Shown here piece after piece: positions 18,136-55,819 of a stretch of 64,000 nt of DNA. This DNA is from Eutreptiella sp. 'Long Island Sound 2002'. Lineage: Eukaryota > Protista > Euglenida. Below the pieces are notes generated by a model that worked only from the letters and a program-made list of their open reading frames with translations, did no database searches and was not told where the DNA came from. The stretch covers positions 2,790,001-2,854,000 of the forward strand of contig OZ038379.1 in NCBI GenBank assembly GCA_964036045.1, given 5' to 3'. The translations under genes were made by a program, and so were the position numbers. Each line of letters starts with the position of its first letter. Within the stretch, counting starts at the first letter, position 1.

Positions 18136-18142
18136 GTGGGCC

Positions 18143-18519: not shown

Positions 18520-18555
<36 letters not shown>
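18425..18555. repeat. Imperfect (GCT/GTT)n trinucleotide microsatellite
   Basis: Read directly. Confidence 0.9.
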
Positions 18556-24911: not shown

Positions 24912-25905
24912 AGACAGGTGGAACAGAAAGACAGTTCTGTGTTCTTGAGGGTGGCGACCAATGCGCTGTTCATGGCTTTTCCAGTTGTGCATGATGTGTG
25001 TTATGTGAAGGGAAGGTAGTTTGCAGCTTTCTTGAGCTAGGGCAGTTTGGGTCACCTAATTCTAAGGGCGTTTCAAGGGGTTTGCTTGGGGGCTCTTCGG
25101 GGGGAACATAGTCTAAAAGTAGCGCGCAGTGCGCGCGCAGTGCAAAGACTCCCCCCATGAATCTGACATTGGTTGCCTGCTTGGCACTTTGTTTGCTGCT
25201 GTGTTTGTTCACTTTTGTCACAGTTGTTTGCCCTTTTCATTAATGGACATTGCACAATGGGAGGCACGGATTTGCATAATTTCCCCCTCCCTCACCGAGA
25301 GGGGCGGGCCCAGGGCCTTGTTTTCTAGGAAGACACAGCAGCTGTGCTCCCAGGCACCGCTTCTGTGCACGCCTTAAATTTGAGCACCAGTAGAGAAACT
25401 TTACTTGATCAAGGGGTGGCCAAGATGTGGCCTTGTCCGAGATGCGGATACATGGACAGTGCTGCTGCGGTAAGTGTACGCACGTGGATGCATGTTATGT
25501 TTACGCGTGTATACAATACATGCGTGCAGGTTCCATGCGTGTACGGTAAACAGGCATGCATGTTGAAACTGTGAGGTTTTGCAATGCGTTTTTCATGTGC
25601 ACACGTCTACGGTGCCTAGGGACCATTCTGTCGTCATACTGCCGAGCTACACCCGGTCTACGATTCCTGTGGCACATGAGCCGTCCATATTCGGGATGTG
25701 GCCGTGTCTTAAACAAAGGGGAGCCCCCTGTGCGCCTTCTTGTATGTTTGCATCATTGGCGCTCATGGTATCCACAAACTTGGGGTGCACTATTCGCAAG
25801 GTTGCCAGGAGTGCTTTGCGCGCGCAGAACTTTTTTTCATGTTTTTCCTTGCACCAGGGTCCGTGACCCCCTGTTTTGCATCCTGCCCCCGTTCTGTGAC
25901 ACATT

Positions 25906-25927
25906 TTTACGGCTGAAGCGCCGTAAA
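25906..25927. repeat. Subterminal 22-bp palindrome TTTACGGC-TGAAGC-GCCGTAAA
   Basis: Read directly; starts 127 bp inside the outer end of the left TIR. Confidence 0.9.
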
Positions 25928-26552
25928 ACGTTTGCCTCTGCAGGCGGAAACAACGCGGCAGCAGAATGAAATACAAGACTTGAAACAGCTATGTTGTGTG
26001 TGTGCGTGGGTTAATGGCACAGGAAATGTACAAAGGTGGTGCAAGGCATCAGGCACCTATGAATTGAAAGACTGAGAAGCAAAGGGTCAAAAGGGTCAAA
26101 ATGGTCAATAGTTAGACAAGGAAGGGCGGGAACCTGCTGTTTTCCCGCATGTCGTTCGACAGGATGAACGAGAAACCTCTCAGTGCCCCCAGTGTGCCAA
26201 AGTGATTTATTTGTCTTGGGATGCGGAACTGTTTCTTCGATGAATTTGCTGGTTGATGATTGTCACGTGACAATCAGTGCTGTGGATGGAAACCCCTCCT
26301 CAACTCGCCAGCAAGGATTGACATGGGGAGTTGATCCAGGAGGCGGCGGTAAAAAGTAGAAACCTGCGGGCGAACGTTTCTGCTGGGGGGAAAACAGCCC
26401 ACCCGCGCAAACCAAGGACTTTAGGACAGACAAGCCCCGCCTTAGGCTGCGGCTACACATGCATCCGGTCCGGCCACGGTGCTTGCAGTGGTTGAGCGTG
26501 GGCTCTCACTGTAGGTGGTCGTGAGCTGGCTCAGCTAGCACTACACAATCCC

Positions 26553-26876
26553 CATATATGGGCCAACTCCTTAAAACCGGTTTGTTTTCTCTGTTTTCTG
26601 CTCTTTTGGTGCCCTTTGTTACCTGTCATTGAAACGGGCACCCTCAAAATATACACAAAAATGGTATTATACATGAAAAATGAATTTTTTGACCTCAAAT
26701 ACCCCCTCATGGGGTTTGAACCCACACTCTACAAACCTTAGAGTTGCGTTTTACCTCTAAGCTACGACCTGTCGTCCACGATCTCAGAGAAAACCGTAGT
26801 ATAATAAAAAAAAATTGGAAAATCAGTACTCCTTACATGCTCCAACCACTATTAACCTCCCATGCTCTTAAAACCG
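26553..26876 (+). repeat. DIRS left inverted terminal repeat (324 bp)
   Basis: Reverse complement of 31118-31441. Confidence 0.95.
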
Positions 26877-26977
26877 GTCACGCGCTCACTGAGTTGTTCA
26901 ACTAGTGATTTGCTGTACCCAGAGCTTTGATTTCTGATGCAATCCAAATTGTTTTAAGGATATAAAATTTTAACAAA

Positions 26978-27964
26978 ATGACAGAAGGAAGTGAGACACT
27001 GGATTTTCACGAGTTCGTGCTGAAATTGCCGGATTCGGCGTGGAACCTGAGTTCTGAGTCGTTGGAACATGCAGCACAGTTGGCAAAGGAAGGCGCAATG
27101 AGTGGTCTCAGTCCTTGGCAGGCAGCGTCACTGTATTCCAAACTTACAGGAAAGAAAACACTGGCCACTGTCAAAGACACGATGGCCTTGGTTCGTGATG
27201 CCTTACTCACTTTAAAGGGCGACGACATTGGCAGAACAGGAACGTCGTCGCATCGAGAAGACGTCTTCTTGGCATGCGAAACTTTGAGCGGTCCCAAGGA
27301 CCACGCTGGCCCCGCGTCGGACAAGGAGTCCACGTTCGTGTGGCGCGATGAGGTTCTGTCGCTTCCTTCACGCTTGTCTGCACTCCTGGAAGAGCGAAAG
27401 GTTTTGCAAGACGAGTTTCGCAGAAAAAAGATGTTGAAGCACCTTCCAGTGTTCGACGAGTTCCATAGGGCAGCTGTTAATAACGCGCCAACGCACAAAC
27501 ATCCAGCGGACGCGGAGAAGCGTCGTTGGGAACAACAGGTAAAAGACGCCATGCGAGTCCTGGGAGTAGTCTTAGCACGCGAAGAAGACACAACGGTAGC
27601 TCCGGAAGCACCTGTTTCATTGGTACTATGTGAACATTTGTTTGCAATGTTGGGTGCGTTGGACTACAGCATCCAAAGCTCCCGGCGAGTGGCAGTAGAT
27701 AAACGGTTTGAACAACCTGCGATTGCACCAGAGTTACTCTCGAAGGATGACATGTCACTACTTCAGTCGCGCAACAAATTACAAAAAGACCTGAGAGGCA
27801 CGCGTTTCTCCCCTTACTCGCATCGTAGTTCTTTCCGTTCGTTTTCAACACGAGGTCGTTTTGATCCACGGAGATCTGGCAAAGGAGGCAAAGGCAAAGG
27901 TAAGGGTTTCACCCAAAGATTTGTGCCACGTAACGACAAGTTAGATGAACGACCACAGCAGTAG
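26978..27964 (+). CDS. gag: DIRS ORF1, gag-like protein (328 aa)
   Basis: First ORF after the left ITR; basic RG/KG-rich C-terminus; overlaps ORF2 by 20 nt. Confidence 0.8.
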   Translation: MTEGSETLDFHEFVLKLPDSAWNLSSESLEHAAQLAKEGAMSGLSPWQAASLYSKLTGKKTLATVKDTMALVRDALLTLKGDDIGRTGTSSHREDVFLACETLSGPKDHAGPASDKESTFVWRDEVLSLPSRLSALLEERKVLQDEFRRKKMLKHLPVFDEFHRAAVNNAPTHKHPADAEKRRWEQQVKDAMRVLGVVLAREEDTTVAPEAPVSLVLCEHLFAMLGALDYSIQSSRRVAVDKRFEQPAIAPELLSKDDMSLLQSRNKLQKDLRGTRFSPYSHRSSFRSFSTRGRFDPRRSGKGGKGKGKGFTQRFVPRNDKLDERPQQ

Positions 27965-29978
27965 CTTGACTGTAGAGGATTTATTGGCACCAGCCGTGTG
28001 CGTGCCACCGCCGATCCATCCCCACATGCCACTCTATTTGCGCTGTCGTGCACAATTGCATGAATGGGGAACGTTGAAGGACACATACGCGGCGTCGGTG
28101 ATTCGCAATGGGCTGCAGCTGGATTGGGTTGGCGGTTTTGATCCGGATCGGCCAACCGACGACTTCCGTCCTCGTTCTTCCCACGCAGAGGTAACCGACC
28201 CTGAATTGGTAAAACACGTGTTAGATGCAGTGCAACAGGGTTGCATGGAACGCGTCGAGCGAAAAGACATTAAGTGTTGTGCAAGTATGTTCGCAGTGGA
28301 CAAAGCGTCAGACGAGGCACATCCTGAGGGAGGCCGTCGACCTATCACCAATTTGAAGAACGTGAACCAGTTTGTACAGACCACCTATTTTCGTTTGGTC
28401 ACTCTGTGGGGCATTTTACCGTTCTTGAGACCCGGTCAGTATGCTTGCAAAATTGACCTGAAAAGCGCTTATTTTCACATGGGTATCCATCCGCGGGATC
28501 GACCTTATTTGGGGGTCTACGTCGACGGTGAATTTTACAGGTGGTGCGTTTTGCCGTTTGGATTAAACGTTGCACCACGGGAATGGCAACGCCTCATGCA
28601 ACCAATTTTAAATGCCGTGCGCGAACACGGGGCACTCGTTTGGGTCTACTTGGACGATTGGCTCATCATTGGCAATACTTACCGTGAATGTCTGGAACAC
28701 ACACGTTTTTTGGTACAACTTTTGCATCGGTTGGGTATATTGGTCAATGTCCCAAAATCATGTTTGGAGCCGTCTCAAGAAATTATAATGCTTGGTTTTA
28801 TGCTAAACTTCAGGGAAGGATTCGTCGCGGTACCTCCAAAGCGCCTACAAGCAATTTTTCGGGACGTGAACAGACTGGCACACAGTCACACACCATCAGT
28901 GAGGCGATGCGCCTCCGTTCTTGGAAGAATCCGTTCCTTGTTGTTCGCCATGCCCCATATCCGACTCCTCAGCGACGCCCTGGCGGTGCACGTGGCGGTG
29001 GCAGCCCAAACTGGCTGGGAAGCAGACGTGGCGCTCCCGGAGCGCGTGTCACGTCAGTTGATGGATCTGGCGGACGAGTTACACCAGTGGAAGGGACGCA
29101 CCTTCGTAGTTTCCATGGGTCACGTCAGGGACATGTACTCGGACGCGTCGGATCTGGCGTGGGGCGGAGTCCTTCAAGGGAATGCCCAAGCAGCGTTCGG
29201 TTGGTTCCTGAATCGGGAGGAACACATAAACGTCAAAGAGTTCAGGGGAGCCCTACTGACTATTCAAGCGTATGCGCTGAGGGACACCACGCTGCGATTT
29301 TTCACCGACTCAATGGTCCTTTACTGGTATCTCCGCAAGTGGGGAGGTCGCAAGCCGCGGTTCAACGCATTGATTCTCCAACTGTGGAATTTTACACAAG
29401 CCAATCGCATCGAGATTCAACCGTTTTACGTGCACACCTCGGTGAATCCGGCGGACATTTGGTCTCGGCTTCGTTGGACACCGTCGGAGGCTACCTTCCC
29501 GTCGGACGTGTTGACTTGGATCCTGGAGGAGTTCAAAAGTTGGATTCAGCCGGAAATCGATTGGATGTCAAGGAGTTCCAATGCGGTGTGCAGCAAGTTC
29601 GTCAGTCCGTGTCCTCAGCCGGGGGCTTACGCCATCGATGTCCTCTCCCAGAATCTAACTTTACTTTCACCGGGGTGGGTCTTCCCACCGTTCAAGCACA
29701 TACCTCAGTTGGTCAACAAAGTGTTGGAGTCACCAGGGGTGAAGGTTCTCATGGCTCTGCCGTACAGGCCGCGCGAGGTTTGGTGGAACCTATTGATGAA
29801 ACACGTGAAGTTCGCAGTGAACACGTCGGAGTTCCGTTTGCAAATGCCAGACGGCACGGAGACACAACCACGTTTCGTGTTGACCTTGGCGTATGTTTGC
29901 GTGAATACTATCAATTGCGAGGAGCTACCAACGAAGAGGCGACGCTTATCATCAATGAAATCGGGAAGGACACCTTGA
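27945..29978 (+). CDS. pol: DIRS ORF2: reverse transcriptase, RNase H and N6-adenine-methyltransferase-like domain (677 aa)
   Basis: KIDLKSAYFH, LPFGL..AP, YLDD (RT); YSDAS, HINVKE, FTDS, NPAD (RNase H); IDWMSR..N, WVFPPF (MT-like). Confidence 0.95.
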   Translation: MNDHSSSLTVEDLLAPAVCVPPPIHPHMPLYLRCRAQLHEWGTLKDTYAASVIRNGLQLDWVGGFDPDRPTDDFRPRSSHAEVTDPELVKHVLDAVQQGCMERVERKDIKCCASMFAVDKASDEAHPEGGRRPITNLKNVNQFVQTTYFRLVTLWGILPFLRPGQYACKIDLKSAYFHMGIHPRDRPYLGVYVDGEFYRWCVLPFGLNVAPREWQRLMQPILNAVREHGALVWVYLDDWLIIGNTYRECLEHTRFLVQLLHRLGILVNVPKSCLEPSQEIIMLGFMLNFREGFVAVPPKRLQAIFRDVNRLAHSHTPSVRRCASVLGRIRSLLFAMPHIRLLSDALAVHVAVAAQTGWEADVALPERVSRQLMDLADELHQWKGRTFVVSMGHVRDMYSDASDLAWGGVLQGNAQAAFGWFLNREEHINVKEFRGALLTIQAYALRDTTLRFFTDSMVLYWYLRKWGGRKPRFNALILQLWNFTQANRIEIQPFYVHTSVNPADIWSRLRWTPSEATFPSDVLTWILEEFKSWIQPEIDWMSRSSNAVCSKFVSPCPQPGAYAIDVLSQNLTLLSPGWVFPPFKHIPQLVNKVLESPGVKVLMALPYRPREVWWNLLMKHVKFAVNTSEFRLQMPDGTETQPRFVLTLAYVCVNTINCEELPTKRRRLSSMKSGRTP

Positions 29979-30886
29979 AACGTTACAATTCTGCGTGGCA
30001 CATGTTTGGTACGTTCTTGTTACAAGACGCGGCACTTGCTCCACTGTTGAAGGTGGAGCGCTTTGGTCAAATCCCACTGATGACGGTGGCGGTGCAACTT
30101 TTAAAGTTTTCACGCACGCATTCTTTAAGTGCTGGGCGTATGGCGTATTCAGCAGTGTGTTTATTCCCGTGCTTTTCGCAACTACGTTTCGAGGGTATGC
30201 TACGCAACTTGAAACGTGACTGGTTCGTCAGTGTTCCTCATTATCATCGTTTCTATGATGTACGGCGTCTTATACAAGTCATGCATCAGCAACCTGTGGA
30301 GACGGAAGCTCAGCTGCGCTTGCAAGCCATTTTGTCCTTGAGATTCTTTGCCTTGTTCCGAGGCGTTGATCTGGCGCGATCACGTAGGGATATCCAACGT
30401 GCTGCTCAGCCTTGGTTCATTTCTGCTAAGCGCAAAGGGAGAAGATACTATGCACGTTATCCTATTCACAATGTTACGCCACCGTCAATTGATCCGCAGC
30501 GCTGCTTAGCGCGTTATTTGGAGGCTACTGGTGATTACGAGGGTTCTGAGATTTTTGTGTCCCTACGAAAGCCACGGAAGCCTTTATCATCTGATACCAT
30601 CAACGGTCTCACTACTCGCTGGTTAAGGAAACACCTACTGGAATTGGGGGAACTGGAGGCGGATTCGTTTTCCGCGCATTCTACACGAGGAGCAGCAGCA
30701 ACTGCACTAATCTATCTTGGCGTGGATCCGCATGTGGTAGCAGCATTGGGTGATTGGTCCTGTTACGATACATTCAGAAAGTTTTACGACAGGACCAGAG
30801 CTCTGTTGCGCATCGCGCAAATTCTGGTCCCTCCTGATCTGGCGACTGGAGAAGCGGCGCGCGCTTCACGCCTGGCGATTAATTAA
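29890..30886 (+). CDS. DIRS ORF3 tyrosine recombinase (the frame is open from 28688)
   Basis: LFRGVDL (R), HSTR (HxxR), LGDWS (W) and FRKFY (Y); N-terminal T..RY...W..F motif. Confidence 0.93.
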
Positions 30887-30934
30887 TCCTTATGAAGGGT
30901 TCAGTTCACGGGAGCTCAGTTCTTCCGTTCTGTT

Positions 30935-31046
30935 GCCCATATATGGGGATTGTGTAGTGCTAGCTGAGCCAGCTCGGATTTACCCGAATAGGTGAGGAGG
31001 AAAGAAGAGATGGCGAAGCAATAGCACTACACAAGACACATATATG
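30935..31046. other. DIRS internal complementary region (ICR)
   Basis: 30935-30975 is the reverse complement of the left terminus (26523-26563). 30974-31046 is the reverse complement of the right extension (31434-31506). The two parts overlap at a GA/TC dinucleotide. Confidence 0.95.
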
Positions 31047-31117
31047 CCCACCCTGTCCCTCCCTTAAGTTCTTCGCTCACCGTGAAAAGCAGTTGACACT
31101 TGGGTCGTCGGTTGCCA

Positions 31118-31506
31118 CGGTTTTAAGAGCATGGGAGGTTAATAGTGGTTGGAGCATGTAAGGAGTACTGATTTTCCAATTTTTTTTTATTATACTACGG
31201 TTTTCTCTGAGATCGTGGACGACAGGTCGTAGCTTAGAGGTAAAACGCAACTCTAAGGTTTGTAGAGTGTGGGTTCAAACCCCATGAGGGGGTATTTGAG
31301 GTCAAAAAATTCATTTTTCATGTATAATACCATTTTTGTGTATATTTTGAGGGTGCCCGTTTCAATGACAGGTAACAAAGGGCACCAAAAGAGCAGAAAA
31401 CAGAGAAAACAAACCGGTTTTAAGGAGTTGGCCCATATATGTGTCTTGTGTAGTGCTATTGCTTCGCCATCTCTTCTTTCCTCCTCACCTATTCGGGTAA
31501 ATCCGA
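31118..31506 (+). repeat. DIRS right ITR (31118-31441) plus right extension (31442-31506)
   Basis: Reverse complement of the left ITR; the extension is mirrored in the ICR. Confidence 0.95.
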
Positions 31507-31951
31507 AAGCACATCCCCAAGACCTCAAGCAAGGCCTCAGGCTGTTTCCGAAGAGGATCCACCCTTGCTCTGCCCCTCATGGCAGTTGGGTGAGTGGGGC
31601 GTCGTGGTGTCGTGCGGCCACACTTTGGACAAGGACAACAAAACTCAAAGGCTTTCATTGGGCCCACAACTTTAGGCGTAGGTGGGAAATTTGGGGACAG
31701 GGCAGCCACCTTGTGCCGTGCACCAGGTGGTTAGTTCGACATGGGCAGGATTCCTATGATCTATGTCTTATTAGCGCGGTAAGACTTATGAGGTATGTTC
31801 TGTTTTTTCCTGTTGGTTTGGTATAGGTCCCTTTTTCATGGGGCGTTTTTGATGCCCCGGAAGCAAACCAGGGTTGGCGTTGGGTTGGAAACCCTGAGGG
31901 TCAACAATACCCAGCGGCTCTGGTTCTTTCCACCCGAAAACGTGTTATTTT

Positions 31952-31973
31952 TTTACGGCTCCAGCGCCGTAAA
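31952..31973. repeat. 22-bp palindrome TTTACGGC-TCCAGC-GCCGTAAA
   Basis: Read directly; immediately past the stop of the minus-strand transposase-like frame. Confidence 0.9.
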
Positions 31974-32959
31974 CTTAAGAACACATTCTTTTTCTTCGTA
32001 TCTCCACGAAATCGGGGATGTCCAAAGCGTTTCGCTTCGCAGGCGGACGTACCATAGGCTGCTTTACAACATCCGGTGGTGGTCGAGGACCCGGTTTAGG
32101 TTTGGGTTTTGGCTTAGGAAGGCCATGTGCAGCCTTAGGCCTAGGCTTAGGCTTGGGCTTAGGCTTCGGCCTATTGTTTAGAAGCTTTTCATCAATGGAA
32201 GCCAACAGCCTTTGAGACTCTATGGTTAAGGCTTCGATATTAGGTGAGGGCATAGCACCAAAAATATCCTGGGCCTGTTGCATAGCCTCGGGAGCGGTAG
32301 TGCCATCTCTAAGCTCAATTGGAGCCATTAGGTTACGCAAAAGCTTCACCGCCTGAACCTTTACTGTTAGGTCAGGAGGATCGACCCATAGCCGGTCGGG
32401 AAAGGTGAACCCTGGTGGCCACGCAGTATACGGTCTACCCTGAGACATGGGTTGGGAGGTTAACGGCATGTAGGGTAAAGTACCAGCTAAAATACGGGTA
32501 ATCAGCCGTCCGGTTCTATATTGTACACCGGCGGTAAAGCTACGTGCCAGGTGGGGCTCCGTTAGATTCCGGGGCTCATTAGGTTTCCGATTAAGGTACC
32601 GGTAATGCTTTGCATGCTCCCCAAACGTGATAATGGTTGCGTCATCTTCTTTAGCTTATTGAAGTCCACTCAGAGTGGACTCCAATTTTTCTTCACAGAA
32701 GGATGCACCGGGCAGAGCATCCAGATCTGGCTCCCACTGCAGCAAAGCCAATAGTGTAGCATCCAGGTACTGTTGGCGACCCTGAGTGTCTCTTAGGGCC
32801 ATCAACATGACAGTGCTGAATTGCAACACCTCATGTGCATCAGCACCTGTCCAGGCATCGTGTCGCCTCCAGTGAAGGGTACGCACCCTGTACCCGAGAT
32901 AAAATAGGGCAGGCACATAGTCCCGAAACAGGTACAATAGAGCCTGTAAGCGCTCCTTT

Positions 32960-32981
32960 TTTACGGCGCTAGCGCCGTAAA
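32960..32981. repeat. Perfect 22-bp palindrome TTTACGGCGCTAGCGCCGTAAA, in a candidate 120-nt intron (33063-32944, minus strand)
   Basis: Read directly; GTACTAAG...TTACAG boundaries, length a multiple of 3. Confidence 0.8.
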
Positions 32982-34270
32982 TTGCCTGAGGCCCGTCAAC
33001 AGAGGCAAGTGCACCTCGTATATGGGGTGTTACTCTTCCAGAGATTAGGAAAGCACTTAGTACCATCTGCTCCATCATTCCCACATGGAAGTGGGTGCGA
33101 ATGGTTACCGCTGTAGGATTGTCCAGGAAACCCGGGTGTTCAAGGGTTGTCCACAATGTTAGAAACTTGCGGTAACTCATAGTCAAACAATATTTATAGG
33201 CATGCCACAATCCAAAACGGAGCAGTGTGTCTTGCAAAAACGTACTTGTATCCACAACAACCTATGTTGTGCTGTGATGCAGTTTGTGTATTCTAAAGTA
33301 CAGATCCACATCACATAGCACTGGACTGTACTGGTGGTTAGTTCTCTGGTGCCATTCTAATAGGTCAGAACATACTTGCAGTATCCCCTTCCGGGCTGAT
33401 GCGTTGCATGGTAGGACATCTGCCGTCCACCATGGAGCCATAGTCACTCCGTATCGGTGGATGTCCAGTGGCGTCCGCACCGAGTCATAGTTCAGGTGGT
33501 GTGACCTTAATGTGTCTATCCTTGACCGAGATAGGCGGCTGGCTTCTCTTAGTTTTTGAGGCAAGAGTTGTGCAGCCCGTAGGAGATCTGGAATAGACAA
33601 AACCCCTCTGCGTGGTGGGAACCCACCATCAGGATGTGGCACAGGGAGGACTGCAACACATGTTGCGTTGATGGACATGTCCCTTTTACGACATAAGTTC
33701 CGACTGTAGCGCCACTCTTTGTAGTTATCAATCCAAAGCACAGTACAATGCTTTGTGGCCAAATCCACAATTGTACGTGCAAACTCCATTGCTGCCTGCG
33801 CAATATTTTCCTTGCGGGGTAGCACAAGACCAGTGCCAGCAACAACTGCAGCCTTCGATCGGCTTAGGTCCTCTAGCCGCCGCTCCACCATGGTTGCTGC
33901 ACAGGAGCTTCTTCCCAGTACACCACTGCTCCACCTTTTCTTGGACGTAAAACAGGTCCAAAGACTTTGGGCAAAACTTGTCACCCATCGGCTGCCGGCG
34001 CGGCCACCACGTCTAGGCCAGTCTTTCACCAGGTTCGTTCACACCTTTTGACACCTTTTGTCCCGGCGGGACAAACTGAGGAACCACAGCACAAACATTC
34101 TGCACGGACCACCCACCAGGACGTCCTCAACAATGGCCTCCACATAGGTATACCCTTTGAGGGAACACAGCCCCTGTATGTAGTCGCCCGGGAGGTATAG
34201 GTCATCAACTCCACTGTGAGTGGTACGGCATAGCTTCCTTCGCCGTTTCGCGGCCCCTCCTCGGGAAAAT

Positions 34271-34292
34271 TTTACGGCTGAAGCGCCGCAAA
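34271..34292. repeat. 22-bp palindrome with one mismatch, TTTACGGC-TGAAGC-GCCGCAAA
   Basis: Read directly. Confidence 0.85.
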
Positions 34293-34876
34293 TTTCATCA
34301 TAGTCTGGTGTTTTGTCTGTGAGACCATCATCAGGCATTGATGTTCATAGTGGCGAGAATGCAAATGTGACACAAACACTTGTACAAGTGTGGAATCGGT
34401 TACCATTAGGCAGTTGAAAAACCTCTTTTTCAGGTGGTATGCCATAACCCCAGTCACGCACATGAAATGTGTTTTAATCACATCTACAGCACACACTTAC
34501 CTGGCAGTTATTGGCGCCAGATACTATCTTGGCTCACCAAAATGGAGCATAGACAACTGCGGCTTTGTTGGTGTCGCATTTCAGCTGTGTGCATTCTTGC
34601 CAATTTTATTTTGTTATAGGTATGCACTATTTTGCAGGAAAATACCACCGTTCGTAGTTGCACTTTGTTCCTAGGACCTTGACACATGGGGTCTGTTCAC
34701 TGGCAGTATGCCACTCCGTGTAGATGCGAATGTGGCCACAAGTGCTAGACAGGGGTAAAACCGCCATGCATGCCTGTTTTTTTCCCCGAATAGGGTGTGC
34801 ACTGCAACCTGCCAAAAGGGGTTACAGAGGTGCTGCAACTTGGTACACCGAGGGTGAAATTGCACCCTCCACCTAG

Positions 34877-35078
34877 TTGCAGACACAAAACTACCGCAAA
34901 ATGGCACCGCGTGGTGGCAAACGGGCCCCGCGAGCAGCAGCAGACAAACAACCTCGAAACGAAGAAGACAGTAGTGCTGGTGACGGAAGGGCCTCAGACT
35001 TGGGTACAACAATGTACACGGCGTCCCTTGACGGTCACACCGAACAGGAGTCCCCTTCTGGGCGTCCTGGTGACATAC
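34877..35078 (+). pseudogene. 5' half of a split acidic-protein gene (MAPRGGKR...RPGDI)
   Basis: Joins in frame to the minus-strand text starting at 49969 through the shared GGTGACATAC. Confidence 0.65.
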
Positions 35079-35190
35079 AAGGGGGCGGGGTTTCTGAGAA
35101 ATCTGATAGCGTGGGGGGTTTTGAACCCCCCCCCCCCCTGTTTTAAAAATGGTCTGAGGGGGGGTTTTAAGGGTGTTTTTCGACGCAGAC
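35079..35190 (+). mobile_element. Left end of a small TIR element that split the acidic gene
   Basis: AAGGGGGCGGGGTTTCTGAGAAATCTGATA resembles 49970-50001; flanked by an 8-10-bp TSD. Confidence 0.6.
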
Positions 35191-35344
35191 ACATCATTTG
35201 TGCGAATCGTTTTTCGTGGTATTCTTTTGGACTACACATCCAAAGTTTTGTCCTCGCCTCCGATTCAGCCACTTTTGATTTTGTCCCCTTAGCTAGGGAC
35301 CCCCCATAATGCAAGGGTGACGTTGCATTACCGCACTTTTTTGG

Positions 35345-44300: not shown

Positions 44301-47300
44301 GAGGCGGCAGGGGTTATGTAGCCACCTTGCCCATGTATGGGCCACTCTGATTTTGCTGCCCGCTTTGAAGCGGTGGGGATCCCCGAGGCGGCAGGGGTGA
44401 TGTAGCCATCTTGCCCACTTGTGGGCCACTCCTGATTTTGCCCCCCGCTTTGAAGCGGTGGGGATCCCCGAGGCGGCAGGGGTGATGTAGCCACCTTGCC
44501 CATGTATGGGCCACTTCTGATTTTGCCCCCCGCTTTGAAGCGGTGTTGATCCCCGAGGCGGCAAGGGTTATGTAGCCACCTTGCCCATGTATGGGCCACT
44601 TCTGATTTTGCCCCCCGCTTTGAAGCGGTGGGGATCCCAGAGGCGGTAGCGGTGATGTAGCCACCTTGCCCACTTGTGGGCCACTTCTGATTTTGCCCCC
44701 CGCTCTGAAGCGGTGGGGATCCCCGAGGCGGCAGGGGCGATGTAGCCACCTTGCCCATTTATGGGCCACTTCTGATTTTGCCCCCCGCTTTGAAGCGGTG
44801 GGGATCCCCACGCGGCAAGGGTGATGTAGCCACCTTGCCCATTTATGGGCCACTTCTGATTTTGCCCCCCGCTTTGAAGCCGTGGGGATCCCCACGCGGC
44901 TGCAGCGATGTAGCCACCTTGCCCATTTATGGGCCACTTCTGATTTTGCCCCCCGCTTTGAAGCGGTGGGGATCCCCGAGGTGGCAGGGGTGATGTAGCC
45001 ACCTTGCCCACTTGTGGGCCACTTCTGATTTTGCCCCCCGCTTTGAATCGGTGGGGATCCCCGAGGCGGCATGGGTGATGTAGCCACCTTGCCCATTTAT
45101 GGGCCACTTCTGATTTTGCCCCCCGCTCTGAAGCGGTGGGGATCCCCAAGGCGGCAGGGCTGATGTAGCCACCTTGCCCATTTATGGGCCACTTCTGATT
45201 TTGCCCACCGCTTTGAAGCGGTGGGGATCCCCGAGATGGCAAGGGTGATGTAGCCACCTTGCCCATTTATGGGCCACTTGTGACTTAGCCCCCCGCTTTG
45301 AAGCGGTGGGGATCCCCAAGGCGGCAGGGCTGATGTAGCCACCGTTCCCATTTATGGGCCACTTCTGATTTTGCCCCCCGCTTTGAAGCGGTGGGGATCC
45401 CCGAGGCGGCATGGGTGATGTAGCCACCTCGCCCACTTGTGGGCCACTTCTGCTTTTGCCTCCCGCTTTGAAGCGTCGGGGATACCCGAGGCGGCAGGGG
45501 TTATGTAGCAGCCGTGCCCATTTATGGGCGACTTCTGATTTTGCCCCCCGCTTTGAAGCGGTGGGGATCCCCGAGGCGGCAGGGGTGATGTAGCCACCTT
45601 GCCCATTTATGCGCCATCTCTGATTTTGCCCCCCGCTTTGAAGCAGTGGGGATCCCCAAGGTGGCAGGGGTGATGTAGCCACCTTGTTCACTTGTGGGCC
45701 ACTTCTGATTTTGCCCCCCGCTTTGAAGCGGTGGCGATCCCCGAGGCGGCAAGGGTTATGTAGCCACCTTGCCCATTTGTGGGCCAATTCTGATTCTGCC
45801 CCCCGCTGTGAAGCGGTGGGGATCCCCGAGGTGGCAGGGGTGATGTAGCCACCTTGCCCACTTGTGGGCCACTTCTGATTTTGCCCCTCGCTTTGAAGCG
45901 GTGTTGATCCCCGAGGCGGCAGGGGTGATGTAGCCACCTTGCCCATGTATGGGCCACTTCTGATTTTGCCCCCCGCTTTGAAGCGGTGGGGATCCCCGAG
46001 GCGGCAGGGGTGATGTAGCCACCTTGCCCACTTGTGGGCCACTTCTGATTTTGCCCCTCGCTTTGAAGCGGTGGGGATCCCCAAGGTGGCAGGGGTGATG
46101 TAGCCACCTTGCCCATTTATGGGCCACTTGTGACTTAGCCCCCCGCTTTGAAGCGGTGGGGATCCCCAAGGCGGCAGGGCTGATGTAGCCACCGTTCCCA
46201 TTTATGGGCCACTTCTGATTTTGCCCCCCGCTTTGAAGCGGTGGGGATCCCCGAGGCGGCATGGGTGATGTAGCCACCTCGCCCACTTGTGGGCCACTTC
46301 TGCTTTTGCCTCCCGCTTTGAAGCGTCGGGGATACCCGAGGCGGCAGGGGTTATGTAGCAGCCGTGCCCATTTATGGGCGACTTCTGATTTTGCCCCCCG
46401 CTTTGAAGCGGTGGGGATCCCCGAGGCGGCAGGGGTGATGTAGCCACCTTGCCCATTTATGCGCCATCTCTGATTTTGCCCCCCGCTTTGAAGCAGTGGG
46501 GATCCCCAAGGTGGCAGGGGTGATGTAGCCACCTTGTTCACTTGTGGGCCACTTCTGATTTTGCCCCCCGCTTTGAAGCGGTGGCGATCCCCGAGGCGGC
46601 AAGGGTTATGTAGCCACCTTGCCCATTTGTGGGCCAATTCTGATTCTGCCCCCCGCTGTGAAGCGGTGGGGATCCCCGAGGTGGCAGGGGTGATGTAGCC
46701 ACCTTGCCCACTTGTGGGCCACTTCTGATTTTGCCCCTCGCTTTGAAGCGGTGTTGATCCCCGAGGCGGCAGGGGTGATGTAGCCACCTTGCCCATGTAT
46801 GGGCCACTTCTGATTTTGCCCCCCGCTTTGAAGCGGTGGGGATCCCCGTGGTGGCAGGGGTGATGTAGCCACCTTGCCCACTTGTGGGCCACTTCTGATT
46901 TTGCCCGTCGCTTTGAAGCGGTGTTGATCCCCGAGGCGGCAGGGGTGATGTAGCCACCTTGCCCATGTATGGGCCACTTCTGATTTTGCCCCCCGCTTTG
47001 AAGCGGTGGGGATCCCCGAGGCGGCAGGGGTGATGTAGCCACCTTGCCCACTTGTGGGCCACTTCTGATTCTGCCCCCCGCTTTGAAGCGGTGGGGATCC
47101 CCAAGGTGGCAGGGCTGATGTAGCCACCTTGCCCATTTATGGGCCACTTCTGATTTTGCCCCCCGCTCTGAAGCGGTGGGGATCCCCGAGGCGGCATGGG
47201 TGATGTAGCCACCTTGCCCATTTATGGGCCACTTCTTACTTAGCCCCCCGCTTTGAAGCGGTGGGGATCCCCAAGGCGGCAGGGCTGATGTAGCCACCGT

Positions 47301-48289
47301 TCCCATTTATGGGCCACTTCTGATTTTGCCCCCCGCTTTGAAGCGGTGGGGATCCCCGAGGCGGCATGGGTGATGTAGCCACCTCGCCCACTTGTGGGCC
47401 ACTTCTGCTTTTGCCTCCCGCTTTGAAGCGTCGGGGATACCCGAGGCGGCAGGGGTGATGTAGCAGCCGTGCCCATTTATGGGCCACTTCTGATTTTGCC
47501 CCCCGCTTTGAAGCGGTGGGGATCCCCGAGGCGGCAGGGGTGATGTAGCCACCTTGCCCATTTATGCGCCATCTCTGATTTTGCCCCCCGCTTTGAAGCA
47601 GTGGGGATCCCCAAGGTGGCAGGGGTGATGTAGCCACCTTGTTCACTTGTGGGCCACTTCTGATTTTGCCCCCCGCTTTGAAGCGGTGGCGATCCCCGAG
47701 GCGGCAAGGGTTATGTAGCCACCTTGCCCATGTATGGGCCACTTCTGATTTTGCCCCCCGCTTTGAAGCGGTGGGGATCCCCGAGGTGGCACGCTTTGAA
47801 GCGGTGGGGATCCCCAAGGTGGCAGGGGTGATGTAGCCACCTTGCCCATGTATGGGCCACTTCTGATTTTGCCCCCCGCTTTGAAGCGGTGGGGATCCCC
47901 GAGGTGGCAGGGGTGATGTAGCCACCTTGCCCACTTGTGGGCCACTTCTGATTTTGCCCCTCGCTTTGAAGCGGTGTTGATCCCCGAGGCGGCAGGGGTG
48001 ATGTAGCCACCTTGCCCATGTATGGGCCACTTCTGATTTTGCCCCCCGCTTTGAAGCGGTGGGGATCCCCGAGGCGGCAGGGGTGATGTAGCCACCTTGC
48101 CCACTTGTGGGCCACTTCTGATTTTGCCCCCCGCTTTGAAGCGGTGGGGATCCCCAAGGTGGCAGGGGTGATGTAGCCACCTTGCCCACTTATGGGCCAC
48201 TTCTGATTTTGCCCCCCGCTCTGAAGCGGTGGGGATCCCCAAGGCGGCAGGGGTGATGTAGCCACCTTGCCCACTTGTGCGCCACTTCT
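35345..48289. repeat. Satellite array, 85-bp monomer, ~150 copies, with higher-order repeats
   Basis: Consensus GGGCCACTTCTGATTTTGCCCCCCGCTTTGAAGCGGTGGGGATCCCCGAGGCGGCAGGGGTGATGTAGCCACCTTGCCCATTTAT; variant monomers recur at multiples of ~85 bp. Confidence 0.99.
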
Positions 48290-48651
48290 CCAGGGAATCT
48301 CTTCTCATTTTGCTCCCTTTGTTGGTCGTATTGCCCTTTATTTTGCTCGGATGCATGTGTTTTTTTTCAGGTAAGTGGCAGCACGGGCGGTTCCCTTGAA
48401 AAATGCAAAGGTGGCCAATCGTCCTCATTTGAATGCAGAGCCATACCTTGGTGTGGCACATACCAACATGCAGCCCGCGGAAGCAATAGAGTTTTGTTTG
48501 TTTTGTGGAGCGGCCATTGCTTTGGCAAGGATGCGTCATCATGTGGCAGTGCACTGCAGAAAAGAGACGTGGTAACGGACCCAAGGATGCGTGGTGAGGC
48601 CGAACTTATGGTTTTTGTGGACGCACAACAGCCACATATACCACAAGTATT

Positions 48652-49272
48652 GTGCGCAAGAAAATCAGTAGCACATGCCCGTGTCTGGTCCCATTGAAGC
48701 TCGCAATGGCCATGCGCAAACAAGAAAACATGCCCCGTGAATGTCCTATTCCCGGGTGCAGTGCCACCCCGTGGGTTTTGAACATCAAAACTCACTTGGC
48801 TCGGTGCCATCCAACCGTGCCACCCATCACCGTTGATTTGACGGAATGGGTTGTAGTCGGGCAGGACGATGAGAAAAAAAAGGGGCGAGCCAAAAAAATC
48901 CCCATGGTGATGAAGCCCAAGATCACTTTGAAAGTGGCAAAGGCGGTCGACAACGAGAGTGCGTCCTTCTGTGAAGCCTCTCTTGGACGCTCCGACTGTG
49001 ACCGGTAACCGGAGGAGGATGCAAGCTCTGTGGAATCTAGGTCTTCCGCAGATAACGATTCGTCTAGCGGTAACGAGAGTTCCGCAACTTCCGAGGATGG
49101 CAATAGCTCCTCTTCTTCCTCATCTTCTTCCGCTTCTACCTCTTCTTCCGGGGTGGAAGTTCTCCCGGAAAAGAAAGCTGTTCCTGGCAAGGGCACAAAG
49201 CGGCCCATCACCACTACCAAGCAAAATGCGAAGAAGCGTTGCACGGTGAAGACGTCAGGGCGGAAGAAGTAG
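48652..49272 (+). pseudogene. C2H2-like zinc finger plus Ser/acidic and Lys-rich protein with one premature stop
   Basis: CPIPGC-x11-H-x4-H; the ORFs 48652-49008 and 49030-49272 are in the same frame across TAA 49006-49008. Confidence 0.5.
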
Positions 49273-49284
49273 GCGGAGCTACAT

Positions 49285-49285
<1 letters not shown>

Positions 49286-49313
<28 letters not shown>
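49286..49313. repeat. (CA)n microsatellite
   Basis: Read directly. Confidence 0.95.
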
Positions 49314-49318
<5 letters not shown>

Positions 49319-49365
49319 CAAACGGATACCCCCCCCACCCCCTACACCTCCTCGCTCTCCCTCTC

Positions 49366-49412
49366 CTTACGGCGCTTCAGCCGTAAAATTTTTACGGCTG
49401 AAGCGCCGTAAA
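49366..49412. repeat. Two 22-bp palindromes in inverted arrangement forming a ~47-bp near-perfect palindrome
   Basis: CTTACGGCGCTTCAGCCGTAAA-ATT-TTTACGGCTGAAGCGCCGTAAA. Confidence 0.92.
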
Positions 49413-49462
49413 AATTGTACGCCGTATACGATAGCGATAGTAGCGGTAAAAAACTAACATAC

Positions 49463-49969
49463 CTGCACAGTCCTTTAGGACAATGCTTATGCCACTCAAG
49501 GGATCGCCTTGAGCTAATCCATCTACGTATCGCTCGACTAGTGTGTCGTCCAGTATACGACATTGCCCAAACATCCCCTCGGTGTCAAAGTTAATGTCGT
49601 CGACACTGACGTCTGTTGCAGTACTTATGATGTACTGGCTGATGTCGTAGCCAAAAGCTGCTGTACATCTCTGAGTTGCTCGTCGGTAGTGTTAGTGCGT
49701 CGGGCACTGGTCTCCAGAACCGGCTGCCCCTCCCCCTGGGTAGGGATGGCGTACTGTGGCAGTGTTGTCTGTCGCAGTCGCGGCTTGCTCTGTTGCACCA
49801 CACGCCTCAGGTCTATGTCCTGGTATTCCTCAGCCTCCAAATCCTCCTGGTCCTGGCCTTTGGGTATCCCAAGATATTCGGATTCGTAGTCGTCCGCGGT
49901 TCCGTCGTTTACGTGTGCCAGTTCGTCTCCACTGGATTGTAGATCGGCGTCCAGATGCTGTATGTCACC
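49463..49969 (-). pseudogene. 3' half of the split acidic-protein gene, now inverted
   Basis: GDIQHLDADLQSSGDE...EAEEYQD...; an 11-bp insertion near 49625 (AGTAC duplicated) breaks the frame; GTATGT donor at 49462. Confidence 0.6.
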
Positions 49970-50140
49970 AAGGGGGGCGGGATTTTCGGAAATCGGATAT
50001 CATGCCTAAAAAACCCCCCCAGAGCCAAATTTAAAACAGGGGGGGTTTGGGGGGGGGGGGTTAAGGGGGTTTTTCGCTGCGCGAGGGTATTGTCTGCGGA
50101 AAGGGCACCCCGGCCCCCCAAACCGCCCCCCCCCCCCCCA
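49970..50140 (-). mobile_element. Inverted right end of the small TIR element
   Basis: AAGGGGGGCGGGATTTTCGGAAATCGGATA, adjacent to the reverse complement of the TSD (GTATGTCACC, 49960-49969). Confidence 0.6.
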
Positions 50141-50301
50141 TGAAGAACATAGTGTCGGGCACCTCCGAACAGTTGGGTATGCGGCCCAAGTGTGATCCGA
50201 CAATTCGCACCGCCCCTACCAACGTCTATCGTAGGGCTTCATCGGCTTGGGTATTTCCGGCCGTGGGTACCAGAAACCTCGGGGCTGTGGGTCTCCGAGG
50301 C

Positions 50302-50425
50302 GGTCATGGGGTTCGAAGTACACCATGGGGTTAGAATTGCAGCATGGGGGTTGACCCGCATCAAGGTCCGTCATGGGGTTCGGAATGCATCATGGGGCCA
50401 GAAATACACCATGGGGTGGGAAATG
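50302..50425. repeat. Array of six CATGGGG-core ~19-bp repeats (spacing 19,19,29,19,19)
   Basis: CATGGGG at 50305, 50324, 50343, 50372, 50391 and 50410. Confidence 0.85.
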
Positions 50426-50506
50426 CGTCAAGGGGAGGGCATAAAAGAAGGGGTGTGTGTGTGACTATACTGGTCGGCCGACGCAACTCGGGAGGCCCTT
50501 AAGGCT

Positions 50507-53013
50507 ATGGCAGGCCAGGCCTCCCTCCCCGCGCCATTGTGTGGCCTTCCAGTCCGTTTTACTACAAACTTGCATCACATCACTAACTGTGTGCACCGGC
50601 TTACATACATGGTCATAGGGAACAAACCAATATGCATTGGTGGCCAACATATTACCAAGGCCTGCAAGACTCGACGCAACTACCTGGTGGACACTGGCGT
50701 ACCCTTGCATCGGATATGCCGGCATCTCCAGGTTATGTCGGCCACCATTTTTGCCTCGGACACCCCCCTCCATATTCTAGAGGAGGCGGCGGGCCGCCAC
50801 CAGAGGCAACAGCACGGCATATCCGAAAGTCGGACTGCCGACCTGGTAGATTTTCTCCTTAGGAGAATTAGGAGGCAAAATGCCGGCGGGCTAGGCATAC
50901 ACCTGAGCCCAGATAACTTATTTGCAGCCATACTAGCGTCTGGGGTACGTTTGATGGACGTTGGGACTACTGAGGAACAGAAAACCAGGTCACCTCAACA
51001 GCAGAAGGAGATGCTGGACAAACGGGTATGTTCGTAGTATCTTGTCAACATCTTTCGTATTGTTTATTTCTGCTTATCTATGTCCTCCATTTAGAGGGGT
51101 GACGCTATTAGGCGCTTTACTGGTTTGGGTTATGTCGTCACTGCCGCATCGTACGACGACACCTTTTCAAAGGTGGTTTGGTCAATCAACGAATATTTCG
51201 AGGCTCCCTATGAGCCGATCAAAGCAACAACGTTCCGTGACTACAGCAGTGGCCTGGCCATCTCCGATGTACAGGACCTAGTGCAGTGGCTGTCTGACCG
51301 GCCGTTGAGTGTTACAGGAAACAAGTTGAGCGAGTTTTTGCGGTTTCTGAAAACCAGACGCAACATTATTTGGAATCTATGTCACCCCAAGAATACACTA
51401 GTGGCACCAGAGAACAGTATGTTCCTTCCAGTCCCCTTACTTCGTAGTACTAGTATACGCCATTCCGCCTTTTAGTTGTTGTACCGTTTACGGCGCTAGC
51501 GCCGTACATTATTACTTCTCTGCTGCTGCGCATCACAGAGTCCCTCGAGATGTGTACGAGGCTGGCAGAAGTGATGGCCCAGAAGCACAGCGACAAGTGG
51601 ATGCCAAAAGGTGGCCTTGGCGGAAGGGCGTATGCGGAGCTGAGGACAGGCCGTGCAGACTGGCCTCAGTGGACGGCTCTTCTAGAGAGCCCAATCTGGA
51701 CGGATGCATCCTGTGCGGAACTCCGTTCCAGGTTGCAGAATCCTTCTGGGAACGCGACCGTCACGTCGGCCAAAGGGCCTACTTGTACTGGTGCCCTCGT
51801 TCGGGCGGAACTGGAATTTGGGGATTGGAAGAAACTTATTGTGGCAGGACCCACTTTTGGGTCGGTGGCTGGTGCACGTGGTACCCAGTGCGTCTACGTG
51901 GAGGCGACTAAGGATGATATTCCCCACAGCCAGGACATCATCCAAATCGCCAACGGAGGTACACCAGTTATTGTACTGGGCCGCGGCACCGTCGTCCAAG
52001 ATTGGTTAGACCAGAATTGTACTGATGGAGCCTCGCAGGCTAACAATTTCCGGACTGTAAGTACTATTTACTTGGGGTCAGCTGAGGAACGGCAGTTGTT
52101 CCTCCCTGACCCAAAGCAGACAGGTCTTGCAGGTTCCCTGGTGATGGCCATTTTGAGCCCTAAGGCTATGGTCCTCCCTAGTTACATTGGGAGTCAACTA
52201 GGTTTGCGGGCCAGTGTCATGGCCTTCCCCGTGTTGAAACTGGGGTTGAAGCCCGATCTCAATCAGGGGAATTTTCGGTGCTTGGCACTGGCCTTGAACC
52301 CAGGGCGAACAGATGGTATGCTTTTGACTGCCAGTTTGGCAGATGAGTTTCCCCGTTGGCAGATTTCTGTGGTCAGTGAGCCACATAATTTGGCACATTT
52401 TGACCACAATCTGGCGACTGCCACATCCAAGTATTATGGGACTGTGTCTGCAGACCTGGCCCATGAGGTAACACTTTTGTGCAAGGGCCAGGTTCTGGAT
52501 GACCAGAACATTGCTGTTCTTAGTGTGGAGGAGAGGGCAGCCCAGCGTAGGCGTGTTGGCGAACTGGTCGCCCAGCATAAGAGGGAGCAGAAGAGGAAGG
52601 CCCAAAGGGAAAAGGCTGAGACCAAGAAGGCGGTAAAAACCGCCCTGCAGGGACGAAAAACACAGAAGGCTGCCCAGAGTAGTGGGGCAGCCCTGGAGAC
52701 TGCTGCAGTTGCAGCCCCATCAGATGAAACAGGTATCGTGGGCAACAGTGCCCAAACTCCAAGTAAAGCAGCAGCAGCTAGGCAGGATGCAGCTGACATT
52801 GTCGCTGCAAAGGCAGGTACCCCTGCCAAGGCAGGGACCAGTATGGGGAGCGGTACCGCCTCCCCAAGCAGCAAGAAGAGGCTAGCCAGGGCCCCAGGGC
52901 TTCGGTCTAAGAGGCCTAAGCTTCCAGCAGTTGCCGAGCCTGCTGCACATGGGGATAGGGCTGAGGTTCTTGGTACCACTGAGTTGGAGGCCCTCTTTGT
53001 CGGGCTGCCGTAG
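50507..53013 (+). CDS. Spliced orphan gene, predicted 771 aa (exons 50507-51025, 51095-51416, 51539-53013)
   Basis: Two GTATGT...AG introns (69 and 122 nt) join three ORFs in frame: 519+322+1475 = 2316 nt; no recognisable domain. Confidence 0.72.
51487..51508. repeat. 22-bp palindrome TTTACGGCGCTAGCGCCGTACA inside intron 2 of the orphan gene
   Basis: Read directly. Confidence 0.88.
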
Positions 53014-53772
53014 TGTACATTACGGTGATACATTACATTGACTACACTACATTGATTATGTTCATACTCCATTACCAGATAGTTGTGCGTTATGGTTATC
53101 CTCCGTTTTTGGGAGCGATCAAACTGTATGAACACGTGGGGCACAAATTGAACTGTTTTTCTACCTATTGCTTGCCCGTTTCCTTTTGGGGTGTTCCATT
53201 TTTTGCGCCTCAAGCGCCGTAGATTTTTTACGGCGCTTCAACCGTAAACAGCATGCGTCAATGACATGGAAGATGAAACAGTTCCGTTGGCATTCCATTA
53301 CAAAATTTGGTGAAATTTCATAATTTTTCCACAGTGAGATGCTAAGTCGATTGCATACATCAGAAAGGGGTGCAGGATAAATAGGTAATAGCTTCATACC
53401 TAGCAGTTGACGTGACATTTTTTTTCACTGCCTGCTAATACACGTCAAATCGAAAGGTGACTCTTTTTCACACAAAGTGGTATGTGTTAGTTGGATACTG
53501 CAAGCCACCTGTAAGCACGGTGATCTGCACATCAATGCTCAGCAAGGATCTTTGTCACCCCCCTTTTCTGTAGAATTTTTGTCGTATTTTGTGTTGCATT
53601 TTGACGTAACTTGGGGCACGTTCGTTTTAGGGTACATTTTTTTACGGCTCCGGCGCCGTAAATTTTCGCAAACAAGTGAAATCTGCTGCAAACCCCCATG
53701 TTTTCACGATGTGCTCGCGTTTTTGTACGTTTTTGGGGCATTTACGGCGCCTGCATTTTGGGGGGGACTGCC

Positions 53773-53805
53773 GGCAACCTTGCGAATAGTGCACCCCAAG
53801 ACAAA
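53773..53805 (-). mobile_element. Right TIR (53773-53800) plus TSD ACAAA (53801-53805) of the giant element
   Basis: Exact reverse complement of 25779-25806; palindromes at 53227-53248 (one mismatch) and 53641-53662 lie inside it. Confidence 0.75.
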
Positions 53806-54145
53806 AACAACGTTCCAAATTCTGTCCAGTGATGTGCTGAGGGACACCAATTGCTTTGCAGTTGGATGTCCCCAGTAGAACACCTGGCTCATCGCTGGAC
53901 ATCCGAACGTAGATCTGAGGGGAATGTAATAATATGGCCCTCAATTGTCCAAAAAAAATGGGCGAATGGCAGGAAAAGCGCGACCCAGTGGGATTCCTGT
54001 GGCAGTTCCTTCTGCTCATTCTGCTGGGCGCTGCGACCCAATTCTGTTTGTTAGGCTGTGAATTCCAGCCATGGCTAATGTTGCTGTTCCTGGCATGGCC
54101 TGTTAAGGGCAAGGTGTAGCCCCAAAGAGTCATCCAGAGGGGAGT

Positions 54146-55507: not shown

Positions 55508-55819
55508 ACGCCGTTGTTGCTGTGTTGTATCATGGCATGTATGGGCCACGGGTTGTCCTCTTGTTTCCTTGTTTGTCCTCCTCCACGGGGAGCAATGGGG
55601 AGCAATGTGGATTTTCGGGAATCGTGGGCTGGCGCCAAGGGCTGCTCAAGTCCACTGCGGCTGTTGCTCATTGGAAGCTGAACTTGGGGGCACACAGAAG
55701 TCATCTCCGTCGCCGGTGTGGGACTGCCTCTGTGGCAGGCTGTGCACAGGTCAGGCAGTGGAGTCGCAAGTGCATCACCGGCGTCAGGCCCGTGAGCCCG
55801 GACTACCAGGACTCAGTGG

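Follow-up and report, generated by a model that had tools for sequence, protein, structure and literature searches.

A 28-kb inverted-repeat interval of Eutreptiella as a probable old, inactivated copy of an 8.2-kb transposon with CTTGG ends and dispersed palindromes

The window analysed here, a stretch of 64,000 bp of the euglenid Eutreptiella sp. 'Long Island Sound 2002' (assembly GCA_964036045.1, contig OZ038379.1, positions 2,790,001 to 2,854,000), contains two inverted repeats of 28 bp that lie 28 kb apart and are both directly bordered by the pentanucleotide ACAAA. A first, sequence-only reading took the enclosed DNA for an undescribed giant transposon able to carry a satellite and other elements as cargo. 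The question that this locus raises is whether an interval of such a size is itself a mobile unit or what is left of a smaller one. In our analysis the interval is best explained, with a probability of roughly 0.85, as one old and inactivated copy of an autonomous, terminal inverted repeat (TIR) DNA transposon of the cut-and-paste type, about 8.2 kb in length. The family to which it is assigned is characterized by TIRs of 28-31 bp starting with 5'-CTTGG, target-site duplications (TSDs) of 5 bp, about ten palindromes of 22 bp, and two divergently transcribed genes, namely gene A, coding for a transposase of ~790 aa, and gene B, a spliced orphan.

The two terminal copies of the 28-mer CTTGGGGTGCACTATTCGCAAGGTTGCC match with 0 mismatches, compared with 0 matches in 100 shuffles, and the perfect repeats and the ACAAA at both ends are thereby confirmed. 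The size of the canonical element can be read from the metagenome assembly ERZ25074135, in which the closest transposase cluster has 22 members on megabase-scale linear contigs covered at 31-49x. Eight loci were fetched, comprising three shortened copies and five complete elements of 8,133 bp (L002, TSD TTTGT, equivalent to ACAAA), 8,156 bp (L003, ATTTT), 8,160 bp (L006, CTAGG), 8,188 bp (L008, TAAAT) and 8,192 bp (L009, GGTAT). All five complete copies, located on separate contigs, are bounded by the TIRs of the window and by perfect 5-bp direct repeats, for which the chance of matching flanks is 1/1024 per copy; since four of the five copies sit between unrelated flanks, transposition with a 5-bp duplication is established. 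The copies are 82-98.5% identical in pairwise comparison and yield a consensus of 8,191 bp, in which the transposase frame is open over 812 codons. The short, satellite-free copies that the first reading had predicted do exist, and the tabulation of duplications that it had proposed came out at 5 bp in all five complete copies. In other words, its claim of a new transposon family stands as far as a real TIR family, 5-bp TSDs at independent copies and the lack of Pfam or Protein Data Bank (PDB) matches are concerned, while the cargo is not supported.

The cargo view holds that a giant, multi-gene transposon, of about 28 kb or with a core of about 10 kb, moves the satellite, a DIRS retrotransposon and extra genes from place to place. 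Repeats and duplication do enclose the full 28 kb, and the swollen element is present in two tandem units of the locus. However, every other complete copy measures 8.1-8.2 kb, and nothing in ~170 kb of related loci corresponds to the DIRS, to the satellite or to the further ~1.9 kb of extra DNA. In particular, L002 has the exact flanks and TSD of the window and is for this reason considered a paralogue of the window locus, yet at 8.1 kb it contains neither DIRS nor satellite nor inversion. Moreover, the second occurrence within the window reflects segmental duplication with identical flanks, not transposition: positions 1-12205 and 51802-64000 are 99.73% identical in a self-comparison, flank included, and the window thus covers a direct repeat of 51.8 kb ~1.24 times. 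The third end with ACAAA, noted in the first reading near position 1972, is thus real, but it represents no independent insertion because the same locus is duplicated there with identical flanks. In Starship-like elements the same cargo would be seen at different insertion sites, and here the extras are found at this locus only. Considering also that the window transposase has three stops and that gene B is split by an inversion, we regard the cargo view as very improbable. The canonical element has a length of 8.2 kb and two genes instead of 'at least four', the 'C2H2' and 'acidic' open reading frames (ORFs) being missing from all other copies. The locus can be taken as a warning that a nested, rearranged and dead copy is easily misread as a cargo carrier.

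The anatomy of the window copy is summarized in Table 1. Specifically, its transposase frame is interrupted by a TGA (34041-34043), a TAG (33262-33264) and a TAA (32656-32658), and the four resulting pieces are collinear with the 700-820-aa homologues. A reassigned genetic code behind these in-frame stops is ruled out, as all three stop codons are represented. Because of the three stops, the nested DIRS, the 600-bp inversion and the satellite with other unique DNA, the window copy is, judging from its sequence, dead. There is no sign that the 28-kb form moved at any time, and its growth appears to have followed insertion. On the preferred reading, the transposase would bind the CTTGG ends, excise the element and insert it across a 5-bp staggered cut, and a palindrome-bound, dimeric element protein would assemble or regulate the transpososome. 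After insertion, the window copy would have swelled to 28 kb through the nested DIRS, the inversion, whose two breakpoints both contain filler DNA, and the expanded satellite, and the whole locus would afterwards have been duplicated as the 51.8-kb direct repeat.

Table 1. Coordinates of the window copy and of associated features (positions of the window; consensus positions where stated)
Feature	Position	Strand	Remark
Right end of the preceding 51.8-kb repeat unit	1-1999	+	same locus; TIR at 1972-1999
Left TSD, ACAAA	25774-25778	.	direct reading; same 5 bases at 53801-53805
Left 28-bp TIR, starting 5'-CTTGGGG	25779-25806	+	perfect against right end; also bounds five other complete copies
Left arm (consensus 1-741), with subterminal palindrome 25906-25927	25779-26521	+	consensus blast, 91% identity
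Nested DIRS retrotransposon	26522-31503	+	splits consensus between 741 and 742; in no other copy
DIRS inverted terminal repeats	26536-26876 and 31118-31458		341 bp each, 99% identical
DIRS ORFs	26978-27964, 27945-29978, 28688-30886	+
Element segment (consensus 742-4322), transposase gene and its upstream region	31504-35063	-	consensus blast, 93%
Internal palindrome	31952-31973		1 bp past transposase stop codon
Transposase pseudogene	31978-34338	-	single ~790-codon frame, three in-frame stops
Other palindrome starts	32960, 34271, 49366, 49391, 51487, 53227, 53641
Copy-specific DNA	35064-49366	.	232 bp, then 85-bp satellite, then 1.1 kb; in no other copy
85-bp satellite, ~152 units	35296-48289		within copy-specific DNA
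'C2H2' and 'acidic' ORFs	48290-49366		in 1.1-kb part of copy-specific DNA
Inverted segment (consensus 4331-4930), gene B exon 0 and palindrome pair 49366-49412	49367-49966	-	inverted against all other copies
Second copy-specific segment	49967-50551	.	in no other copy
Right arm (consensus 4936-8191), with gene B exons	50552-53800	+	consensus blast
Gene B exons	one ending 51025; 51095-51416; 51539-53013
Gene B introns	51026-51094; 51417-51538		both start with GTATGT and end with AG
Right 28-bp TIR	53773-53800	-
Right TSD, ACAAA	53801-53805	.

The nested DIRS element and the ~13-kb satellite, both recognized in the first reading, were confirmed, the former by Pfam matches of its reverse transcriptase (RVT_1, E 6.5e-18) and its tyrosine recombinase (Phage_integrase, E 1.1e-7). 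The DIRS looks intact, with three long ORFs and nearly identical terminal repeats. Its reverse transcriptase ORF (27945-29978) also gives a weak match to Dam adenine methyltransferase (E 0.07); co-option of adenine methyltransferases by retrotransposons is the subject of a 2026 preprint (10.64898/2026.05.21.726589). The satellite units are ~90% identical, and the satellite is confined to the window copy of the element. Internal inversions are seen in two old copies, that of the window and that of L006 (10677-12729, consensus 462-2517).

Gene A was compared with 1.84 billion representative proteins by phmmer, using a 255-aa piece of the transposase, and 148 relatives were retrieved (clusters at 50% identity, so far seen in metagenomes only), with full-length members of 700-820 aa. 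Twenty clusters were looked up, and none is present in NCBI or UniProt or bears an informative name. Pfam assigned no transposase family to ten ORFs, ten full-length homologues were without any Pfam hit, and no match for gene A was obtained at E <= 10 among 20 members of the alignment. Likewise, a profile search against PDB sequences, Hermes included, returned nothing relevant at E <= 10, the family alignment, used in a word-index protein search, retrieved only three proteins that were already known, and a protein-pattern scan of the Joint Genome Institute (JGI) metagenome collection gave 19 pattern matches and 0 true relatives.

Structure prediction had been recommended in the first reading, together with a consensus. 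An AlphaFold2 model of a near-intact close relative, P0157, built from a 147-sequence alignment, reached a mean predicted local distance difference test score (pLDDT) of 86.2 and a predicted template modelling (TM) score of 0.82, and displays the strand and helix order of an RNase-H core with an all-helical insertion domain of ~170 residues (402-572). In P0157 numbering, the candidate catalytic residues are D229, in a W-x-D-N motif on strand b1, D368 just after b4, and E574, E575 or E578 on the helix that follows the all-helical domain. These positions are 85-97% conserved among the relatives, or 85-98% when G-x-W-H404 after b5 is counted, a block reading G-[VIL]-W-H-x-Y in which the histidine is kept in 89% of relatives. 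Among PDB structures, Foldseek ranks two transposases highest, Hermes (hAT) and that of the Drosophila P element, with probabilities of 0.77-0.92, the P element structure 6pe2 scoring 0.92 with a target-normalised TM-score of 0.41; in the BFVD library a hAT-family protein of a Pandoravirus comes first (E 8.8e-3). The hAT- or P-like fold is assigned because the top ranks are consistent and the secondary structure and residues follow the same logic. Gene A is accordingly predicted to encode a DDE transposase of RNase-H fold; the model supports this fold class, not a specific kinship, and catalysis would be carried out by the gene A product. Thus, the 'DDE-like transposase' of the first reading is retained at the level of the modelled fold, but its frame in the window is broken. 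Unnamed or 'hypothetical' proteins of ~790 aa in metagenome catalogues can now carry this predicted transposase label.

A second family trait is the 22-bp palindrome TTTACGGC-N6-GCCGTAAA. The two subterminal sites reported at the outset were found as described, at a distance of 127 bp from the left end and of 138 bp from the right. A scan of the window gave 16 palindrome matches against 0.01 expected, every one in element DNA; the consensus holds ten sites, and in the eight loci taken together the element DNA (59.7 kb) contains 68 palindromes and the flanking DNA (109 kb) none. Sites occur in the subterminal regions of both arms, as a head-to-head pair in the promoter region that separates the two genes, within the second intron of gene B, ~200 bp beyond the stop codon of that gene and in frame within the transposase ORF. 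The two in-frame sites, 32960-32981 and 34271-34292, read ..YGASAVK..; the former falls in the insertion domain, partly over residues kept in a 43%-identical relative, and the latter in the N-terminal region, for which the model is not confident (pLDDT < 50). Two other explanations of the sites were rejected: an intron nature is ruled out by the site within conserved coding sequence, and genome-wide mobile mini-elements by the complete absence of sites outside elements.

Three distant relatives extend this picture. The candidate termini are CTTGGTTGGCGC in L010 (ERZ6864647, 7.6 kb), CTTGGGGTGCAC in L011 (ERZ28616029, 7.8 kb) and CTTGGGGGTGCA in L012 (ERZ27246217, 6.7 kb). All share the CTTGG terminus, and each has a palindrome sequence of its own in the same kinds of placement: CGTAAC-N-GTTACG with 20 sites in L010, CACGCGGA-NN-TCCGCGTG in L011 and ACGGGATCGATCCCGT with 8 sites in L012. 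L010, the one relative compared, is ~27% identical in the transposase. As the placement is kept while the sequence changes, a co-evolving, dimeric DNA-binding protein is inferred, and the palindromes are most likely putative sites for such an element-encoded protein, for which the product of gene B and the helical domain at the N terminus of the transposase are the candidates. Co-evolution between a transposon and its own DNA-binding sites could here be put directly to the test.

The main alternative, though an unlikely one, is that the palindromes act in RNA or as DNA structure, namely as terminator or 3'-end hairpins, as sources of small RNAs or as break-prone cruciforms. Each site can form a 9-bp stem flanked by runs of T and A, sites lie just past both stop codons (where L010 and L012 have palindrome clusters), and the head-to-head pair abuts one breakpoint of the window inversion. 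Nevertheless, a terminator would do harm or serve no purpose at several of the other placements (subterminal, between-gene promoter, intron and coding frame), no Rfam match was found, and lineage-specific sequences in constant positions are what is expected of a co-evolving DNA-binding protein.

If the palindromes are indeed protein-binding sites, gene B would be one candidate for the binding partner. The first reading described a spliced 771-aa orphan here; spliced orphan gene B is real, but that version was without the conserved first exon (exon 0, consensus 4330-4854), which in the window lies in the inverted segment. The exon 0 motif IDD..FD..GQ.R.L is the only part common to the distant relatives, and beyond this N-terminal motif similarity among distant elements is undetectable. 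Searches of Pfam, NCBIfam, PHROGs and the PDB gave no match for gene B, and a protein search with its 487-aa exon returned only three clusters, all from the same genome. From these comparisons gene B appears to be a fast-evolving spliced protein in which only the N-terminal motif is conserved. A quite improbable alternative is a DNA-binding protein of the ParB/sulfiredoxin type, with the palindromes as parS-like sites. The motif hPIDDhxFD..GQxRxL..V..L, followed ~45 residues later by Y.C.SGQH..A.K, resembles the spacing of ParB boxes I and II, and ParB proteins are binders of dispersed palindromes. However, no ParB match was found for gene B in Pfam, NCBIfam, PHROGs or PDB sequences at E <= 10, and hhalign against phage P1 ParB gave a probability of 0.2%. 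The roles proposed for gene B and for the palindromes in an element-encoded regulatory system are inferred from these patterns.

Several observations weigh against the interpretation given so far. Stops or frameshifts are present in 9/9 sampled transposase genes, no demonstrably autonomous copy was seen, and no empty site (for example ...GGTATCCACAAAAACAACGTTCC...) was found in the ~250 kb fetched. The 5-bp duplication is demonstrated in one genome only, and in L010, L011 and L012 the pentanucleotides that border the candidate ends do not match; these contigs may be chimeric short-read assemblies. On the protein side, no Foldseek match falls below E 1e-3 and TM-scores range from 0.2 to 0.4, and the AlphaFold2 model of gene B exon 3 is unusable (pLDDT 36).

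The surroundings of the copies gave some further observations. The gene B exon ORF at 51550-53013 (487 aa) has an exact match in ERZ25074135 of the European Nucleotide Archive, on a 45.5-kb contig labelled circular that is the same locus as the window. Its coverage of 85x, compared with 31-49x for neighbouring contigs, points to ~2-3 tandemly arrayed units or to an extrachromosomal circle. The duplication shared with the L002 locus extends into the flanks, over ~4.4 kb on the left and 0.8 kb on the right. An ORF with leucine-rich repeats (RNI-like) and 87-bp DNA repeats lies at 2345-3706, equivalent to 54146-55507, and starts ~350 bp from the insertion site; after a 21-bp tandem repeat of 6.6 units at 18142-18793 come ORFs that include long stretches of poly-Cys and poly-Ala; and the best named match of a HECT fragment in the flank is a protein of Eutreptiella gymnastica at 54% identity, the next one being at 36%. 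The GC content is 52-56% and the CpG observed/expected ratio ~0.6. Dinoflagellate spliced-leader relics were searched for and none was found, for which reason a dinoflagellate host was rejected; a euglenozoan host is a tentative possibility. Rfam and tRNA scans of the window gave no matches. Isolated near-matches to the first 12 TIR bases outside elements (L003, 871 and 21062; L006, 16896) could mark the ends of a related family or of short non-autonomous derivatives, and a TIR search of JGI metagenome contigs gave no match. A piggyBac-like transposase gene (PF13843) is located at L008 17922-19211, a few kilobases from the element copy.

The remaining question is where this family belongs among known DNA transposons. 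No description of it was found in the literature. New superfamilies are seldom added, and most of those that are stem from protists that have been little sampled. Repbase distinguishes 23 superfamilies of eukaryotic DNA transposons (PMC10045372). Judged from comparisons with Pfam, the PDB and structural libraries and, for superfamilies that have no Pfam models, from their usual TSD lengths, the family is a candidate for a new DDE superfamily or for a very divergent hAT-like lineage. Tentatively, and at somewhat less than even odds, it could be the founding example of an undescribed eukaryotic DDE superfamily with CTTGG termini, 5-bp TSDs, a second protein and a co-evolving, lineage-specific palindrome repeated about ten-fold. 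If this is true, the palindromes would constitute an operator-like network of a kind that is not known from other eukaryotic transposons.

The closest comparison is with hAT elements such as Hermes, Ac and hobo, and that the family is only a very divergent hAT lineage (for example near hAT5) and no separate superfamily is possible, if rather unlikely. Both are TIR elements of the cut-and-paste type with a DDE core and an all-helical insertion between b5 and the catalytic E, hAT transposases are the best structural matches in two libraries (PDB and BFVD), and hAT families with 5-bp duplications are known (PMC12730594). The hAT TSD is 8 bp, with 5, 6 and 7 bp in the hAT5, hAT6 and hAT7 groups (PMC12730594), and the 5-bp TSD of the element fits only the minority hAT5 type. 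However, hAT5 belongs by sequence within the animal Blackjack-type hAT (PMC12730594), so that Pfam should recognize it, and no hAT domain (Dimer_Tnp_hAT, BED and others) was found in 20 sequences at E <= 10, nor was there a sequence match to Hermes or a BED finger. Moreover, the third terminal base, always G in hAT (PMC1131882), is T in the element, which reads C-T-T-G-G in all four lineages, and the C/DxxH motif of hAT (PMC10045372) appears as GxWH, with G where C or D is expected. The second divergent gene and the dispersed internal palindromes are the element's own. The first reading had treated the 5-bp TSD as unmatched among known families; this is not the case, since it is shared by Transib (PMC1131882) and by the hAT5 group.

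P elements and THAP9 are the second-best structural match and have in common with the element a DDE core with an insertion domain, but the element is without a THAP domain and without a Tnp_P_element match in Pfam. P elements make 8-bp duplications, have a GTP-binding insertion domain, where that of the element is all-helical, and possess internal transposase-binding sites. Transib, the ancestor of RAG1, ends in the heptamer CACAATG (PMC1131882) and not in CTTGG, gave no PDB sequence match, and is absent, as is RAG1, from the top 50 Foldseek PDB matches. In general, the CMCT clade (EnSpm, Mirage, Chapaev, Transib, Plavaka and others) has 5'-CA..TG-3' ends and TSDs of 2-5 bp (PMC12730594), in contrast with the CT..AG of the element. 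No Transposase_21, KDZ or Plavaka match in Pfam was found in the sequences scanned.

En/Spm and PIF/Harbinger may resemble the element in their way of working, pairing a transposase with a second protein and having repeated subterminal motifs, head-to-head pairs included; their transposase folds are different, and the perfect palindromes of the element are spread over its whole length and not only over the subterminal 200-300 bp. En/Spm (TnpA and TnpD) and PIF/Harbinger (transposase and Myb-like protein) make 3-bp duplications and have CACTA or other termini. Kolobok (TTAA), Novosib (8 bp), Sola (4 or 8 bp), Zator (3 bp), Dada (6-7 bp) and Academ (3-4 or 9-10 bp), which have no Pfam models, differ from the element in these typical TSD lengths (partly PMC10045372). 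Placed among these systems, the gene A family may fill in the deep history of the transposase group that includes hAT and P.

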